A stretch of DNA of 64,000 nucleotides from the NCBI RefSeq assembly GCF_964204645.1, contig NC_134030.1, positions 851,355-915,354 on the forward strand, in the 5' to 3' direction. A program made the position numbers and the translations under genes. The notes beneath the pieces were generated by a model that was not told where the DNA came from, made no database searches, and saw only the letters and a list, made by a program, of their open reading frames with translations. Positions 6,001-63,964 of this stretch are shown piece after piece. Each line of letters opens with the position of its first letter. Within the stretch, counting starts at the first letter, position 1. The DNA is from Tubulanus polymorphus (Eukaryota; Animalia; Nemertea).

Positions 6001-8393
6001 GAAGTTCCGATTCACATGGTTTACGTTCCGTCACATCTCTATCACATGCTGTTTGAATTATTCAAGGTAACTCATTTCTGATCGATATATCATTCTATGA
6101 GATTTTTCATGATATTATCGTAATATTTACCAGCAGAATTTTGACGTATAGTTTATATGAATGTTTATTTACTAACGACGCCGTGGTTTTCCTATAGAAT
6201 GCGATGAGAGCAGTGGTTGAATACCACGGTACAGCCAGTGACGATTATCCTAAACTTAAAGTAATGGTTTGCAAAGGCAAAGAAGATCTCACAATAAAGG
6301 TAAAAAATAATCTCTTGTTGTTTCCTGCTTGGCCCCTTTGTGCTCGACCCCCTGCCTCAATTCTAGGTATAACATCTATAACAGTCGGATATATTTGATA
6401 TGTCTGACGTCTATAGCGCGCAGCAGTTCATCTAGAGGTTTCTCATTTTTCTGCCGTGAATGATTAGTTTTTCTGAGAATGTAATTGTATGTATTTGTTT
6501 GGCCGGGCTTTCGCTTTTGTTTCGTTGTAATCCTGAAGATGGCAGCACTTGCTGGAGTATGAATTGATTTTATATTTTCAGCTCTCCGATCAAGGAGGAG
6601 GTATATCCAGGAATAATATAGATAAACTATTTAACTATATGTATTCAACAGCTCCACAACCGGACACAAGTGGCTCCACCTCCGCTCCACTTGTAAGTTT
6701 AGTTACCGATGAATTGTGCAATTAATTTTTGTCAAATTTTGATATCCGCCACTGTCTTTGGTGGAGAATGGAAAGCACAGGGGCTCGTCATGAGAGCTGG
6801 GGGTCCAAAATCAAAGATTTGACCCAGATTGGTAACAGGATACTGGGTCAAATCATTGATTTTGGACCCCAGCTCTCATGACAAGCCCCTGTGATGGAAA
6901 GTGGATTACGGCAACTATTTTAGAGTAGTTTCTTCTCTTTCCAAAAGCTGAACTTCTCACAAAAATATCAAAATCCGAAGAATTTCTTGTTCATTTTTCG
7001 ATTTTTGAATTCAAATTACTCTCAATTTTTGTAAAAACTTCTACAAGAAGAGATATCTAAGTAGCCTTAGGGATCATTCATTTATTATGTACCCATTAAA
7101 TTTGAATTTTTCAACCCCCCTCCCCCTCTGTACGCAAAATCGGCCATTTTTTCATATACATAAAGCATTACAGTACGCAATTGCACTGACCCCCTCCCCC
7201 TCCCCTAATGCATACGTAATAAACGAATGATCCCTTATCCTGTTACTGACCATCAGTTTAATTATTGTCATGAATTCTGAATTGTCGTGTGTTTAACAAT
7301 TTCAGGCAGGTTATGGATACGGTTTGCCATTATCGAGACTTTACGCTAAATACTTCCAAGGAGACATAATACTCAGTTCAATGGAGGGCTACGGCACTGA
7401 TGCGCTTATATACTTAAAGGTAATCAGTTTGCTTTGATTGCGACATCGCATGGAATTGTTGTGAAGTAGCTGAATTTCTGCAGATCTCAATCATTTTCTG
7501 AATGGTCTTACTTTACCTTCAACCCGAAAAAGGTTTTAATCGGGATCAATATGATTTCTGTCAGTTTTCTAATTGTAATGAAGAGATAGTTCTATAAACT
7601 CGTAAGTCTATAATCTCAGTATAAAACTGGTCAAATATCTGTCAGTTTTCTGTTTGTAATGAAGAGAACTGGGGCTGGTTCCATAGTCATGGCTTAGACT
7701 TGAGACCAGTCTAAGACTATCTTGGTTCTATAGCCTATCTAACAGCTTAAGACCACTTTCAAGATTTAAGACCACTTTTTGGACTTCAGTCTCGACTATG
7801 GAACTGCTCTATAAGACTGTCGCTTCAACTATAAGCCTATAATCTCAGTATCAAACTGGTCAAACATCTGTCAGTTTTCTATGTGTAATGAAGAGAGATG
7901 CTCTATAAGACTGTGTCGCTTCAACTATAAGTGTATAACCTCAATATTGAGCAAATTTCTATTTCATAGATGCGCCATTGTTGCTAGGAATGACTTCGCC
8001 ACCAGGGGGCCATATTTGATACTCAAAATAACCCCTATTGTTAACATTAAATAATAACAGAATCTAACTGTGGAATAAACTGATTCTATGTCTATAAATG
8101 TCAGCAGTTAAATGAGTGGATCGGTAATCTGTGTTTATTACTAATTATTGTAGGTTTTCCCTGCAGAAGCGAACGAACTGTTACCGATTTATAATAAAAC
8201 ATCTTATAAACAATATCAACACGGAATACCGGTAGCTGATTGGTCGAATCCGTCGCATACGACTGGATTACACGCCGTGCTGAACTTTCCGACGCATCCT
8301 TCGCACACGAGACGTGGATATCATACGTCACTGCGCCATCTATTAACCCAATCACGAACTGCTGCTAAATCTCGCGACGACAAAAACGTATGA
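1..8393 (+). CDS. PDK: Pyruvate dehydrogenase kinase, mitochondrial (5'-partial, 11 exons in window)
   Basis: Exons 1-74, 1888-1959, 2071-2134, 3224-3344, 4739-4825, 5443-5520, 5990-6066, 6198-6299, 6582-6692, 7306-7419, 8154-8393 (TGA), all GT-AG with consistent phase. Motifs: [56 protein letters not shown] (N box), SDQGGG (G1), [29 protein letters not shown] (G2), C-terminal DW. Confidence 0.96.
836..1088. mobile_element. Non-autonomous DNA transposon (MITE-like)
   Basis: Terminal inverted repeats CAGGCCTGTAGGCAG / CTGCCTACAAGCCTG; no TSD seen. Confidence 0.45.
3035..3238 (+). repeat. 33/36-bp tandem repeat containing the PDK splice acceptor (6 copies)
   Basis: Unit TTTGATATATTTCAG|GGTGTAATTGAG(A/C)TGATA(ATA); AGs end at 3052, 3085, 3121, 3154, 3190, 3223. 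Confidence 0.95.
3345..3584 (+). repeat. 34-bp tandem repeat containing the PDK splice donor (7 copies)
   Basis: Unit GTAAGTATTCACTGTATCTGACCTGTATCACACA starting at 3345, 3379, 3413, 3447, 3481, 3515, 3549. Confidence 0.95.
6776..6893. mobile_element. Palindromic MITE with 8-bp TSD (hAT- or P-type)
   Basis: Near-perfect ~50-bp inverted arms CACAGGGGCTCGTCATGAGAGCTGGGG...CCCCAGCTCTCATGACAAGCCCCTGTG, flanked by direct repeat ATGGAAAG (6768-6775, 6894-6901). Confidence 0.85.
7070..7234. mobile_element. PIF/Harbinger (Tourist-like) MITE, copy 1
   Basis: TIRs GGGATCATTCATTTATTA / TAATAAACGAATGATCCC with TTA TSD on both sides; close copy at 9317-9477. Confidence 0.85.
7670..7806. mobile_element. 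MITE family B (GGGGCTGGTTCCATAGTC...GACTATGGAACTGG)
   Basis: Related copies at ~16720-16834, ~25507-25620 (inverted) and ~27550-27693. Confidence 0.75.
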
Positions 8394-8801
8394 TCGCGAT
8401 CTCATGAATTAATTTAATGCGTTGATGAATTGTGATTTTATAAAGTGTTGAATGAATCGATTGCTATGAGTTCGTACTGTAACAGAGTTTGAATATTTAT
8501 TGAATATTTCTCCGCGAGAGGTTTCACCTCATTTCAGATAATTACCTCCTCATCATTGAGGTAAGTATATACGAGAGGTAAAACAGTGGATTCAGATTAA
8601 TTATCTACGATAAATCAAAAAAACTGCTGTTACTGCGAGTTAATTTGAATTGTCGGTTTTATTTCTGATTGTTTTATTGGAAAACATTTGTAAATAGTTT
8701 ATTCTTCTGTATTATTACCTGTGATAATACACCATGGATAATCCGAGTTAATCCTGCGGATAATCCGAGCTAATCCTCCAGATAATCCCTTAGTTACATC
8801 A

Positions 8802-8913: not shown

Positions 8914-9316
8914 GATGCTGCTGAATCAACCAATCCTCCCTAGAAAAACTACTTAAATATTCAAATTTAATTTTACTCATAAAATATGCTTCAGTTTAAA
9001 TTTCATTACATGTATATGCTTATTGAGTTATAGGATTGATGGGTAGTTGATATTAAGTGATATGTAATCAAAAATGCGTTCTATCCGCCTTGTTTAACAG
9101 GATATCAATGATATTAGATTAGATTTCAATGATATCGGATGAGATATCGATTATATTTAGCGATCTATTCAGTCTCTATTCAGTGATATTTGATATATCG
9201 TGATGTTTCAAATATCATCACCGTAATATATTATTTCCTAAATTCAGTTAATTTACAAAGACTAATGTTTATCCTATACCGGTAGTTCACAGTATAATCC
9301 TATGTGTGTTTGCTTA

Positions 9317-9477
9317 GGGATCATTCATTTATTACATACGCATAAAATTTGAATTTTCAACCCCCTCCCCCTCACTACGCAAAGCGGCCATTTTTTCATA
9401 TACATTAAGCATTACAGTACGCAATTGCACTGACCCCTCCCCCTCCCTTAATGCGTACGTAATAAATGAATGATCCC
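9317..9477. mobile_element. PIF/Harbinger (Tourist-like) MITE, copy 2
   Basis: Same TIRs as 7070-7234 with TTA TSD. Confidence 0.85.
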
Positions 9478-10459
9478 TTATAAAACAAACACAAAATGTA
9501 TTGTAAAAATAGGTTATTAACCGAGACCAGGACGCAGGGAATAAGAAATGACTTCAGGAGGAAAATATTACAGGAGGACAAAGAAATGAAAAGGGTATAT
9601 ATTATACTGTTAAACAGGTATTGAGTGCCCTCTAAAAGCCTCAGGGGAAAATTAAGTGATCCAGTGCATTTTGTGCGAATTCCCGAGGTATTACATAAAA
9701 AGAGAAATCTATAAGACAAATGTCCACAAACAGGAGGTAGGGAGTGTGAGGGGAGGGGAGGGGAGGAGGTAGGGAGTTTGAGGGAGGTGGGGAGTGCGAG
9801 GGGAGGGGTTGGTTGTAGTGTTAATATTTCATAGTGTAAAATGATTGTTTGATAAACAAATAAAAATGAAATCACTGTAAATAAATATCAAAGGAGCTTT
9901 AAAAATGCTTCGACTTTAGATGATTTGAAATCTGAATTATTTATGTCTTTAAAAACAAAATAAAAGACGGAGGGTTCGGATTTTATTTTTAGTTGCTGGA
10001 AAAATTTCAAAAGTGTTAATGAGAATTTACTGCCATGGAAACATAGTGGAATCCAGTTAGTGGAATCTACATTCCACTTTTGAGTTCATAGTGGAATCTT
10101 TTTATTCCACTCCTGAGTTCTGAGTGTTCTACGTGATCATTAACTCTTTTGTTATGGACAATCTCTGATATTTAAAGTATTTAGGAATAAATTCAAGATG
10201 TTATCATAAAAATATCACTTGCTGTTTTACTTCATTAGTTATCATCTTTTGTGTTAATTCAAATTGGAAGGTTTCGGTCAGTTTCACTCCTGAGTTGGTT
10301 AAAGATAACCGGTGGTGGACAAATACCATCAGGTTACAATTCTGGGTCCAGTTGCTCAAAGATTTGTTACAGATTACCGGTGGACAAATACCATAGCAAC
10401 AATGAAATTTCAATTGTCTCTATGTTACTATGAACAGACCGATCAGGGCCACAAACATC

Positions 10460-16280: not shown

Positions 16281-16594
16281 CAGTATTCCTGAAGATGACT
16301 ATTTAGGATAAGGTCGAAACGTTGAATAAACTACACTAGCTCAAGGAATACAGTATTCCTGAAGATGACTATTAGGATAAAGTCGAAACGTTGAATAAAC
16401 TACACTAGCTCAAGGAATACAGTATTCCTGAAGATGACTATTAGGATATAGTCGAAACGTTGAATAAACTACACTAGCTCAAGGAATACAGTATTCCTGA
16501 AGATGACTATTAGGATAAAGTCGAAACGTTGAATAAACTACACTAGCTCAATGAAACATCGCAGACTCAGTATTCCGAAGATGACTATTAGGAT
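16281..16594 (+). ncRNA. Tandem array of minimal type I hammerhead ribozymes (69-bp unit, 4 copies plus 1 partial), Penelope/retrozyme-like
   Basis: Each unit: helix I TATTC, core CTGAAGA, T, helix II GACT..AGTC (GACTAT/ATAGTC in copy 3), GAAA, palindromic ACGT, GTT cleavage triplet, helix I' GAATA. Units start at 16281, 16351, 16420, 16489; partial at ~16568. Confidence 0.75.
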
Positions 16595-21889: not shown

Positions 21890-22285
21890 CACTATTGTCT
21901 CTGTTGCTCCTTAGTGTTTATAAGATGCATTAGCTGCTCATCAAGTGTTTATAAGAGGCACTAGCTGCTCCTCGAGTGCTTATAAGATTCACTAGCTGCT
22001 CCTCGAGTGTTTATAAGATGACTAGCTACTCCGGAATCAGTGTTTATAAGATGACTAGCTACTCCGGAATCAGTGTTTATAAGATGACTAGCTACTCCGG
22101 AATCAGTGTTTATAAGATGACTAGCTACTCCGGAATCAGTGTTTATAAGATGACTAGCTACTCCGGAATCAGTGTTTATAAGATACACTATTGTCTCTGC
22201 TGCTCCTGGATCAGTGTTTTTAAGATGCGCTATTGTCCATGCTGCTCCTCGAGTGTTTATAAGATCCGCTACTGTTGCTCCTGAA
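21890..22285. repeat. Tandem repeat with a 33-bp core unit (AGTGTTTATAAGATGACTAGCTACTCCGGAATC) and diverged flanking units
   Basis: Four near-identical central units plus degenerate outer units. Confidence 0.9.
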
Positions 22286-23059
22286 TCATAATGTTGGTAG
22301 AAATCCACCATCTTGTTGAAGAAATCCATCGTTGGGTCGTAACTCGCTGCTGCTGGCTCCACAACTTCTCATCTGGACGTCTGCAGTTTTCATCGGCATC
22401 AGTAGTCGTCTACTTTTGGTTGTCGTTTACCAAGCGATGACCATTATTTCTAGGATAGAGTTTTTCTGAAATAAGTTAAGAAGAACATCCTTTGAGGCAG
22501 ACGATCCTAACAAGCATTGATTATAATTTATACGTTAATTTGAATTATACGGGCTGCCATGTTTTTTGTAGGGGCAAAATTCATCGAAATTGTTTGCCGC
22601 TTAAGGCCACAATAATTAATAGTAGTTCAGCGGCATAAATACATCACTGTTTAAGTGACAATAGAATATGAGGCTGGATATAAAATCAGCTGTACGTGTT
22701 AATTGACATGTGTATCAACTTAACTTTCTTAAGATTGCCGAGCATCCTTTTTTCATCGTCCTGTGGTGTCTACGTCATCTTCTTAATCATGGTGGGCCTG
22801 TTCAGATTAAGTTTACCTAAAATGAGAAAAAGAACAACATTCTGTAGTCACACAATTGTCTGATTAATTGTAATTATTATTATTAATAATAATAATAATA
22901 ATGACATGTGTATCAACTTAACTTTTTCAAGATTGCTGAGTTCAGTATCGTCTTGTTGTAGCATCCTTTCATCGTCATCTTCTGTCCTCTTCGGCGGCGT
23001 CGTCGTCTTCTGGGGGAGTCCTGAAATGAAAAAAAAGAACAGAGATGAAAACCTGGTAC

Positions 23060-23864
23060 GGAACAAAACTAATGTCCGAAAGCGTTGGCTCCCCGGCGCC
23101 GGTCAGGTGCAGAGGATAACAGAAAAAGAGTCAGCCAGGAATTTGCTGCCCTCTACACGCCCTCACACAGAACGCAAAAACCTGAATGGCAACGCCTCAC
23201 GTCCACCATCAAACCACAGGGTGTACTGGGCGACGTCAGTAACTGACAAACCTGTAAGATTGCACGAAATACAAATAGCGCAGTACAACCAGCTTGACCG
23301 GGTTGAGATTCAGGATCTCAACTAGCACCCAAAAGCGTGACAAGAGACTTCATCCACTGACCGAGGTTGTCACAAGGACACAATGAAACTAGCACTCACA
23401 AGCCGACAAGAGACTTCATCCACTGACCGGGGTTGTCACAAGGACACAATGAAAACTAGCACTTAAACTAGAAATCAAAGAGCGTGACAGTAGAATCATC
23501 CCTCAGCCGACTCAGAATACCAGAAACAAAGAGCGTGACAGTAGAATCATCCCTCATCCGGGCGGTCACAAGGACACAATGAATGCTAGTAGCGTGACAG
23601 TCCAGTATAACCACTCCATTTTTACCCCGAACATCCGACAGATTTGCCCGTCATTGACGTCGTTCAGCACACACTGCAGTAAGATAATGAACGTGAAGCA
23701 GTTGTCGTCCTGGTTTTCGTGTTCCGTATGAGGGCGTGTAGAGGGCAGCATTTCCTGACCGACTCTTTTTCTGACATCATCTGCACATGACCGGCGAAGG
23801 AGCCGACGCTTTCGGACATTAGTTTTGTTCCATAGTACGTTGAAAATCGACAGATAGATCGGCC
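23060..23864 (-). ncRNA. Candidate intron-spliced long hairpin RNA (~195-bp inverted arms)
   Basis: Arm A 23060-23254 and arm B 23639-23831 are inverted repeats, ~80% identical by eye. On the minus strand, acceptor TTTTTCAG (exon starts 23864), donor GGG|GTAAAA (23625) and acceptor CTTACAG (exon starts 23251) would remove the spacer. Confidence 0.5.
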
Positions 23865-25670
23865 CTGAAAAATAAAACGGATTATACGCTGAAAAAAAGA
23901 ACGGGTTAATAAACACGGAACAGCACACGACAGCACACGGACGGACAGTAACACATAAAACATAAAGACGTCGTTCTTTAAATGGAAAGAACCAGCTAGT
24001 AGAGCGCAGCGTAATCGCGAGGATGATCGCGAGGATGATCGCCAGGATGATCGCCAGGATGATCGCCAGGATGAACGCCAGGATATTCGAAATCATGTCT
24101 GCACAGGGTGAAGATCAAGAGATGAATGACCGGCTTAGTGATTCTACTCACTGTCGACCGGTGGCGTATTTCAATATTGACCAATCGGCAACCGCGCTGT
24201 TGTCTCTGGTCGTTGAAAGGATTTACATCGAAGTGTACAGATCGTTCCGCTGTTGCACACGCAGGGCGATCGTGACGTCACCTCTGTAATACATCCGGCA
24301 TATAGACCGGGCACACGGGTACCATTGAATATTGATCTATAGAAATATCTCTAAACATTTCGAATTGTCGAAGTTACCGCATGATAAAACACTGACGCGA
24401 CGTCACCGTTATACACCCGGCATATGGAATAAACTTGATCGAAAACTAATAGCAAACAATTTGAATCCCCTGCTCCTATGCTGCAATGCCGCCATGAAAA
24501 TAAATTGGTCGTTTTCAGAAACCCTTGGTTGCAACGAAGTTTGTTTATCACTTACCGACGGTTATGCACGTAATAAAATATAAAAACCAACTTAATTATA
24601 TAAAATGAACGTAAATTTCCTCAAATTGTGAACTGGCCCGAGTACTGCCTCGGCCGGTCCGCATACGTGAAACGCCTCAAGTTTATCAATCATCTTTATT
24701 TTTCCCAAAAAATCATACAATAATCGGGGTTTTTTGAATGAATGTTAGGGGCACTCGGTGTAATTCATTCAATATTTGATTATATTTGAAATCAGCAAGG
24801 GCTGACAAGGCGCAGCCAACTGGGAGAGGCACCGATTATTCATAATATCGACGAGACAAATTATCCTTTCTCGCATCGAACTTTAACTATGTATTGTTGA
24901 AATCGGAGCCGTTCGGTCAAAAGGACGGACTACCTGGCTCGCAGCACCAGCGGGAATCCTTACTAATAGTACCTATTGGGGTCAAAAACTTCGAGCCCCT
25001 GTGAGCTCAAGGAAATTTTTCGGACTTAACGTTATTTTCTTGTTATTATTGTGGGATTTTCTACTTATCATGGCCACAACACAGGGGGTTATTCTGCCAG
25101 TTAGCCACTGAACATTTACTTGAACTATAAACTTGAGTTAAACAACTTACACAATGCGAGACAATATTTTCAGTTATAAAAAAACTTTATTTTACAAATT
25201 ATACACATTAATAAACGCATTACATTCGTTTTATGAGTTCCACTCTAATGAGTGGAATCAAGTGGAACTTCCACTCGAATTAAACATGTACCCGATATAG
25301 ATAGTTATTTTCTATTAGGAAAGAAAACAAAATAACAGACAAGGTATATAACTGTTTATATAGGTACCAAGCTTACTGGTTATTTGCTATTCAAGTTGAA
25401 CAAAATTTAAATCATCGATTTTTATATCACGATGAAACAAAATCTAAAATAACGTGCAATTAACATAACTTGTTATAAGTAAACTTAACTCGATTAAACT
25501 AAAACTGGTGCTGGTTGCATGGTCATGATGTGATCTTAAGTTGTTAGATTGGCTATGTAGAAATAAGTTGGTCTTAGAGTGGTCTTAAGTATAAACCATG
25601 ACTATACAATTGATCCCTGATTAGAATTAAGTGAATTACAAATGATTACATGTATAGAGCTTGCAGCAGT

Positions 25671-36293: not shown

Positions 36294-63964
<27,671 letters not shown>

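Follow-up and report, generated by a model that had tools for sequence, protein, structure and literature searches.

Within the 64,000-nt stretch of the genome of the nemertean Tubulanus polymorphus that was analysed here (contig NC_134030.1, positions 851,355 to 915,354 of the forward strand; henceforth the window) lies a long inverted repeat, and it raises the question whether such a structure represents a single hairpin-RNA gene that is kept by selection, or something else. An earlier note, made from the letters of the window alone, had taken the former view, i.e. that two arms of about 195 bp, separated by a repeat-rich spacer, constitute the intron-spliced precursor of small interfering RNAs of endogenous origin (endo-siRNAs), transcribed from the minus strand and selected for its double-stranded RNA (dsRNA) structure. 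We find that the inverted repeat is probably a slightly worn member of a gene-like, apparently non-coding family of some 150 repeat units that is concentrated toward the chromosome ends. What looked convincingly like a unique hairpin-RNA gene is thereby seen to be a single member of a repeat family, with a selection-like signature that was inherited and not earned at the locus.

The inverted repeat itself was borne out by formal local alignment, which places arm A at 23057-23255 and arm B at 23638-23834 (196 aligned positions, 160 of them, i.e. 81.6%, complementary, and 4 gap nucleotides), and by an inverted-repeat search, which recovered three collinear arm segments of 43-50 nt each with a complementarity of 84-88%. 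In the minus-strand RNA, arm B is the 5' arm of the hairpin and arm A its 3' arm. Among the 25 transitions that separate the arms in the local alignment, 18 yield G:U pairs in this RNA and 7 yield A:C mismatches (two-sided binomial p=0.043), close to the ~19 versus ~7 that had been counted by hand. Counts made on the predicted structure were discarded as circular, A:C pairs being impossible to predict, and strand-symmetric alignments were used instead; a global alignment of this kind gives 26 G:U versus 8 A:C over the longer basal stem of this locus (p=0.003). Over 196-237 aligned positions, Watson-Crick pairs make up 76-82% of the stem and G:U pairs another 11-13%; the share of G:U among the stem pairs is about 13-14%, and these pairs are split evenly by arm (9 and 9).

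The predicted folds differ between the strands in the direction that had been anticipated. For the unspliced RNA of 831 nt, the minimum free energy is -433.3 kcal/mol on the minus strand (z -21.5) versus -340.9 kcal/mol on the plus strand (z -16.9); the arms alone, folded as two separate molecules, reach -301.1 (minus) versus -259.7 (plus) kcal/mol, and the strand difference in folding amounts to 40-90 kcal/mol. The predicted structure is an intramolecular duplex of hundreds of base pairs, which is the structural hallmark of hairpin RNAs (hpRNAs). A mutational strand bias acting on the whole surrounding unit was ruled out as the source of the G:U excess, since the minus strand shows a G+T skew only in the hairpin (arm A, +0.22), in the spacer (+0.24) and in a T-rich leader intron (+0.25), with values close to zero over the rest of the unit. 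The modelled RNA is therefore expected to form a long stem preferentially on the minus strand, and its G:U excess is real.

The genome in which further copies were sought is the window's own assembly (267.8 Mb, 77 contigs). With the segment 23040-23870 as the query, at least 40 near-full-length matches with an identity of 90-94% were retrieved from contigs C1-C12 (all 40 scored candidates, the best 40 of 175, matched). An invariant 27-mer from the spacer has 100 genomic matches, 82 of them exact, versus 0 for the reversed control; a 20-mer common to both arms occurs 146 times in forward and 146 times in reverse orientation, and a 24-mer from the outer arm 150 and 155 times, respectively. There are thus about 150 hairpins in the genome, about 100 of which have this type of spacer. 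They are found on all 12 large contigs and on one small contig, in both orientations, and fall into classes with an arm-to-arm spacing of 583 nt (the subfamily of the window), ~600-606 nt and ~500-530 nt. Their distribution is skewed toward the contig ends: of 61 copies on 8 contigs, 46 are less than 3 Mb away from an end (these being contig ends, not identified telomeres) versus 26% expected (p=1e-15; Kolmogorov-Smirnov p=2e-15). The window itself is situated 0.85-0.92 Mb from the start of contig C6, and is dense in tandem arrays. What we observe is a multicopy and dispersed family, and neither a single locus nor a local tandem cluster. The remark that no other copy is visible holds within the 64 kb of the window, which contain one copy, and fails genome-wide, where the locus is one of ~100-150 dispersed copies; the notion of a single selected gene had to be abandoned. 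Solo arms were found neither in the window nor in ~270 kb of other family loci (330 kb altogether). At three places on contig C9 the spacer 27-mer is doubled at a distance of 227-273 nt (C9:12546873/12547100, C9:15048168/15048441 and C9:15166492/15166719), which suggests that these copies carry an extra internal spacer module.

To see where constraint resides, 20 of the ~150 copies were aligned, namely the window and 19 others, with the classes of ~600 and ~500-530 nt spacing left out; 17 of the 20 are referred to below as majority copies. The G:U excess is present in all 20 (G:U 26-36 versus A:C 7-12; 29-36 versus 9-12 in the majority copies), and in two-molecule folding of the arms the stem of the window (-316 kcal/mol) is weaker than the best stem of the majority copies (-344). 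A bias that every copy shows goes back to the founder and predates the expansion, and it is uninformative with respect to selection at any one locus. There is no sign of locus-specific selection at the window copy.

Variable events per alignment column amount to 0.31-0.34 in the arms and ~0.32-0.34 in the flanks, i.e. the arms drift at the rate of the flanks, versus 0.069 in the spacer, about a fifth of the value for the arms (Fisher p=9e-20). The spacer, or apical domain (23256-23637), has a nearly invariant core (23279-23613) and contains internal direct repeats of 66 and 51 nt, in keeping with its description as repeat-rich. When the window is compared with the majority consensus, 10-17% of the arm positions differ, as opposed to only 2 of ~325 spacer positions, and the transition is sharp at the arm boundaries. 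Depletion of CpG does not account for this conservation, the difference being found at CpG sites (0.11 versus 0.44-0.58 in the arms) as well as at non-CpG sites (0.065 versus 0.30-0.31). The spacer had been regarded as a removable intron that leaves a small loop; it is the most conserved part of the element, the opposite of what is expected of a passive spacer. What is odd about the family, and unexplained, is the much stronger constraint on its apical domain than on its stem.

In the arms, conservation takes the form of two blocks that are mirrored across the stem. The inner one consists of 23712-23748 on the side of arm B (a run of 41 columns without shared variants, permutation p=0.018, including the 20-mer counted 146/146), which pairs with 23146-23182 on the side of arm A (a run of 37 such columns, permutation p=0.020). 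The outer one consists of 23808-23831 in arm B (within a run of 28 columns without shared variants, and with the 24-mer counted 150/155), which pairs with 23060-23083 in arm A, as delimited by the alignment, the runs of columns without shared variants and the 24-mer counts. Where a column of one arm is variable, its pairing partner in the other arm tends to be so as well (odds ratio 6.6, p=0.0015). Both the apical ~330 nt and the two mirrored blocks are under strong constraint, whereas most of the stem drifts neutrally.

How the family was spread can be approached through the margins of the copies. The majority copies have a core of ~1,450 bp in common, and the flanks outside it are common to subsets only, some copies having more than 6 kb of further repeat-rich sequence in common in a mosaic fashion. 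Homology between copies extends ~210-260 nt past arm A and 140-1400 nt past arm B, where the end on the promoter side varies by copy pair (~169, 240-300, 460-490, 500-535, 550-570, 750, 870-920, 1020-1040, 1070-1295 and 1430 nt beyond arm B). The window has the segment 22793-23976 in common with the majority of copies (BLAST against the 19 copies, 85-89% identity, and a coverage map), and the longer segment 22213-24555 in common with its two closest copies (BLAST), L002 on C12 and L003 on C2. Among the majority copies, divergence is 0-0.06 at the hairpin and 0.10-0.15 at the edges of the core, beyond which the sequences are unrelated; a transposon would be expected to decay uniformly, without such a rise outward from the hairpin. 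L003 (C2:614031-617861) is a mosaic, with an inner arm B of the majority type and an arm A of the window type, which implies exchange between family members. The nested breakpoints, the recombinant copies and the enrichment at contig ends fit segmental duplication or ectopic recombination, and we infer that the units would have spread between chromosome ends in this manner and not by transposition.

In 19 copies we found no terminal inverted repeats (TIRs), no target-site duplication (TSD), no common terminus and no unrelated insertion flank. A miniature inverted-repeat transposable element (MITE) or other foldback transposon, to which the family is alike in its copy number, its long inverted repeats and its short middle part, was consequently rejected: the inverted repeats are internal and not termini, homology continues beyond the arms, neither TSDs nor common ends exist, and the flanks are homologous between copies. 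The earlier note had likewise argued against a MITE, and had named arms that are the TIRs of a multicopy foldback transposon as a finding that would speak against its gene; the arms are indeed multicopy, yet they are not terminal and no TSD accompanies them. The family is closer to subtelomeric duplicons and chromosome-end gene families, with which it shares the enrichment at the ends, the mosaic flanks with staggered breakpoints, the recombinants and the surrounding tandem arrays. Subtelomeric multicopy families usually carry recognisable coding genes, whereas the leader and the cassettes of the present units (see below) have neither coding constraint nor relatives, and their conserved centre is a fold-back of the RNA type.

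The units have a gene-like layout. Every copy shows the same order on the minus strand: a promoter-proximal ATG with a Leu/Ile-rich leader is followed by a T-rich stretch, in which an acceptor-like TTTTTCAG motif occurs twice, and this in turn by arm B, the spacer, arm A and the cassettes. In the window, the ATG (24096-24094) opens a hydrophobic, signal-peptide-like leader (23994-24096, from the list of open reading frames (ORFs) and Tandem Repeats Finder) that reads MISNILAF(ILAI)n and is written by a 12-nt array at 24014-24084 (5.9 copies). The leader of the majority copies, MLPWILLLAIFAALPLLLLFLL, is a different, CTCCTG-type Leu-rich one, and the hydrophobic leader hence varies by microsatellite-like expansion.

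An acceptor-like TTTTTCAG stands directly 5' of arm B (23865-23872, AG 23866-23865), its CAG being invariant in 20 of 20 copies, and a second acceptor-like motif, TCTTACAG, is found at the inner end of arm A (23252-23259, AG 23253-23252), where ACAG|G is equally invariant. The GTAAAA donor to which attention had been drawn before (23620-23625, GT 23625-23624) occurs in the window and L002 only, with GATACA in the other 18 copies. Another donor-like motif, GTTATAC (23605-23611, GT 23611-23610), which is situated 14 nt downstream, may take its place, as its GTTA (alignment columns G260, T261, T262 and A263) is invariant in all 20. The splice motifs of the earlier note are thus located where it had put them, and both of its acceptors are kept throughout, but its donor is confined to 2 of the 20 copies. 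Judged from motifs alone, the spacer could be an intron bounded by the invariant GTTATA donor and the ACAG|G acceptor.

The region 3' of arm A comprises TTTCAG, a purine-rich block of ~70-100 nt, GTTAAGTTGATACACATG, which opens an intron-like stretch of ~90 nt that ends in CTCATTTCAG, and then a further block. In the window, the exon-like purine-rich cassette 1 (22923-23020, minus strand) has the acceptor TTTCAG (AG 23022-23021) and the donor GTTAAGT (GT 22922-22921), and the exon-like cassette 2 (22725-22816, minus strand), with the acceptor TTTTAG (AG 22818-22817) and the donor GTTAAGT (GT 22724-22723), is a tandem duplicate of it according to the direct repeats. Similar cassette duplications are present in L002, L003, L016 and L018. 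All copies have a counterpart of cassette 1 at this place, with stop codons and indels that are not multiples of three in several of them, and in general conservation is higher in the splice motifs and the intron-like stretches than in the exon-like blocks.

Whether the units encode protein was examined with the exon-like pieces searched one by one. An unspliced leader ORF of ~129 aa is open in 11 of the 17 majority copies. It bears no coding signature (9/13/13 events per codon position; 13 synonymous versus 22 non-synonymous changes, the random synonymous fraction being 0.25), and arm B has frame-shifting indels between subfamilies. The ORFs of the unit have no match in Pfam, the leader ORF of the majority copies has no homologue among 5.8 billion proteins, and the leader ORF of the window is not on record in public assemblies. 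A family of genes for (secreted) proteins was rejected on these grounds, i.e. the lack of a third-position excess, the frame-breaking indels and stops, and the lack of Pfam matches and homologues. Rfam gave no match in the whole window at the gathering threshold and chance-level matches only in 22600-24400 at E values up to 10, so that a known structured RNA (microRNA (miRNA), small nucleolar RNA (snoRNA) or ribozyme) was discarded for want of a credible covariance-model match; no tRNAs were found. On this evidence the unit looks like a gene-like unit of the RNA polymerase II (Pol II) type on the minus strand that is apparently non-coding. It resembles the non-coding host genes of snoRNAs and miRNAs, in that the exon-like blocks, with their frame-breaking indels and stops, are less conserved than the hairpin and the intron-like parts, and it differs from them in that neither the hairpin nor the spacer matches Rfam and that the structure is far longer than a primary miRNA transcript.

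With respect to processing, the genome contains one Dicer locus and about four loci for ADAR/ADAT-type deaminases, and no RNA-dependent RNA polymerase (RdRP) was detected in it; there are plausible processors for a long hairpin RNA, and no amplification route. A genome-wide search with the two conserved arm blocks revealed no trans target outside the family: the 20-mer and the 24-mer occur about as often as there are hairpins, equally on both strands, and nowhere beyond them, which leaves the silencing in trans that had been suggested for this locus without a target. One family copy (C6:22407567-22408397) lies ~4.4 kb from a match to an ADAR/ADAT-type deaminase domain (C6:22412835-22415754), an adjacency that is probably a coincidence.

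The reading that we favour, i.e. a non-coding, gene-like repeat family of the chromosome ends, can be extended into a mechanism. The units would be, or would once have been, transcribed by Pol II from the minus strand, and their primary transcripts would carry the fold-back in the 5' part, formed either within the first intron or from arm-exons around a conserved intron. The G:U-rich asymmetry may have been fixed in the founder, such that the RNA can pair without the DNA being perfectly palindromic any longer; a founder selected for RNA pairing is in line with the logic shown for engineered G:U hairpins (PMC9263138). The engineered hpRNA[G:U] design contains 18-26% G:U (PMC9263138). Like such transgenes and their intron-spliced hairpin RNA (ihpRNA) counterparts, the present element has a spacer bounded by splice-like motifs and, at ~13-14% G:U, keeps the RNA stem and breaks the DNA palindrome; unlike them it is natural, has its G:U pairs in both arms (9 and 9) instead of in one converted sense arm, and does not conserve its GTAAAA donor. 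As to a role in present-day copies, the most likely possibility, here put forward tentatively, is that the units still supply a double-stranded or otherwise structured RNA domain, the working parts of which would be the conserved duplex blocks and the apical domain. This domain might be processed by the single Dicer and/or bound by ADARs, and small RNAs, if any, would have no match outside the family. As a whole the family resembles inverted-repeat RNA loci within dispersed repeats. If discrete RNA products exist, it would be a rare natural hairpin family of the G:U type outside insects and plants, and would offer a handle on endogenous dsRNA biology in spiralians, about which, to our knowledge, almost nothing is known. 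It is rather unlikely that the ~150 units are all active dispersed Pol II genes, each yielding an 800-nt G:U-rich RNA rod from the constrained parts of which (the two mirrored duplex blocks and the 330-nt apical domain) defined small or structured RNAs are made that act on the family itself. Were this true, it would imply a self-targeting silencing of chromosome ends, or a buffering of dsRNA, in a spiralian whose genome has a single Dicer and no RdRP, by elements that belong to no described class of hpRNA, miRNA or transposon.

Several observations weigh against a family built around a functional RNA stem. At stem positions that are Watson-Crick paired in the majority, we counted, among the derived changes, 33 transitions that leave a wobble pair, 21 that break the pair and 26 transversions, and the ratio of 33 versus 21 shows no preference for pairing when set against the 77 versus 63 of non-stem controls (Fisher p=0.52). 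Neither do the arms co-evolve between subfamilies: arm B of the window forms 178-182 pairs out of 191 with its own arm A versus ~180 with the arm A of the majority, and such equal pairing across subfamilies means that a functional stem is not demonstrated in present-day copies. The claim of a selected dsRNA structure is accordingly sustained as far as a strand-specific, G:U-rich stem is concerned, and not beyond, the bias being ancestral and present selection for pairing being undetectable. The conservation of the apical domain could result from gene conversion or from a role at the DNA level (e.g. as a regulatory element). On its own this domain is marginally structured (z -2.07 on the minus strand and +1.16 on the plus strand); RNAalifold extends the hairpin through it (309 pairs, with a terminal loop of 6 nt), but given this z-value for the minus strand and a DNA-level inverted homology of ~56% we do not rely on the spacer as a continuation of the hairpin. 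Furthermore, the results on constraint and pairing come from 20 of the ~150 copies, with the more divergent spacing classes outside the sample; the strand of expression, the splicing and the processing are all read from motifs; and the units might be carried by something larger and mobile (e.g. a Helitron), the ends of which would lie outside the DNA examined.

These points bear directly on the rival explanations. If the units were active hpRNA genes of the Drosophila type, their stem would be diced along its length into siRNAs of ~21 nt that act in silencing, either of a target in trans or of the family (e.g. in subtelomeric regions), which we consider unlikely. Much of the architecture would suit such genes, i.e. 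a stem of ~200-235 bp that forms preferentially on one strand, a Dicer gene in the genome, a gene-like promoter/leader with splice motifs, and a G:U share of ~13-14%, which is within the range that supports RNA interference while breaking the DNA palindrome (PMC9263138). Multicopy hpRNAs are moreover known from Drosophila, with 9-20 copies of hp-CG4068 and 13 of hp-tHMG, and loci such as these (hp-CG4068, the hp-tHMG cluster and Nmy/Tmy) share with the present family a long inverted repeat in a spliceable-looking unit of the Pol II type, a stem on one strand, and fast changes in copy number and sequence (PMC10317233). The defining traits of the Drosophila loci, however, are siRNAs that depend on Dcr-2 and arms that derive from the target gene (PMC10317233), whereas the present family is known from DNA and its conserved blocks have no target beyond the family, nor were there solo arms in the 330 kb. 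Its copies are scattered over all chromosomes and form no local cluster, its arms evolve at the flank rate without a pairing preference, its loop is more conserved than its arms, which is unexpected for an siRNA precursor, and only one Dicer locus and no RdRP were found in the genome.

The neutral drift of the arms, the pair-breaking changes that are as common as in controls, and the lack of arm co-evolution would all be natural if the hairpin were a functionless relic, i.e. an old inverted duplication in the first intron of a decayed family of secreted-protein genes that was copied passively. The bias at the window, which on the arm limits of the earlier note reaches only p=0.043, and the documented recombination between copies, through which homogenisation is possible, can be put on the same side. 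Such a relic would owe its G:U excess and its conserved spacer to chance, gene conversion or local differences in mutation rate, and this we hold to be quite improbable in view of the G:U excess of the longer stem (p=0.002-0.003), which is matched by the 40-90 kcal/mol strand difference, the confinement of the skew to hairpin and spacer, the conservation of the spacer at both CpG and non-CpG sites with sharp edges at the arm boundaries, the mirroring of the conserved blocks across the stem, and the retention of the exact 27-mer in 82 of 100 copies. Very improbable, in turn, is that the hairpin unit resides in a mobile element (foldback/MITE-like, a cargo of the Helitron type, or a non-autonomous retroelement) and that the fold-back serves its mobilisation. 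Mobility is suggested by the dispersal of ~150 copies, in either orientation, over all large contigs, and by the mosaic sharing of more than 6 kb of additional repeat-rich sequence, which is often seen in captured cargo; against it stand the internal position of the arms with homology for 200-1400 nt beyond them, the absence of TSDs and of a common end in 19 copies, the non-uniform divergence that is lowest at the hairpin and rises outward, and the chromosome-end bias, which fits the spread of duplicons. Moreover, neither a poly(A) tail nor a tRNA/SINE (short interspersed nuclear element) head was seen, and no ORF of 100 aa or more is present in the 7 kb that were analysed of the long shared repeat on the left side of one copy.

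The tandem arrays around the family are of several kinds. Just downstream of the unit on the minus strand, the window has an array of a 33-nt repeat (21913-22275, ~8.5 copies, plus a 42-nt variant), and similar sequence adjoins 13-14 of the other family loci examined; this array is open in several frames and is uninformative on coding. Large arrays elsewhere in the window are found at 16281-16555 (69 nt, 4 copies), 42224-43929 (72 nt, 24 copies, 95% identity), 52045-52951 (a C-rich 12-nt repeat in 74 copies, with a GC skew of -0.61) and 57069-57900 (30 nt, 28 copies). The downstream repeats of the majority copies are exemplified by L023 (C1:1576000-1585999), where they occupy positions 7563-8422 and 9301-9479 and include a 243-nt repeat in 3.8 copies and a 59-nt repeat in 3 copies; repeats of this type belong to the mosaic sequence of more than 6 kb that subsets of the copies have in common.

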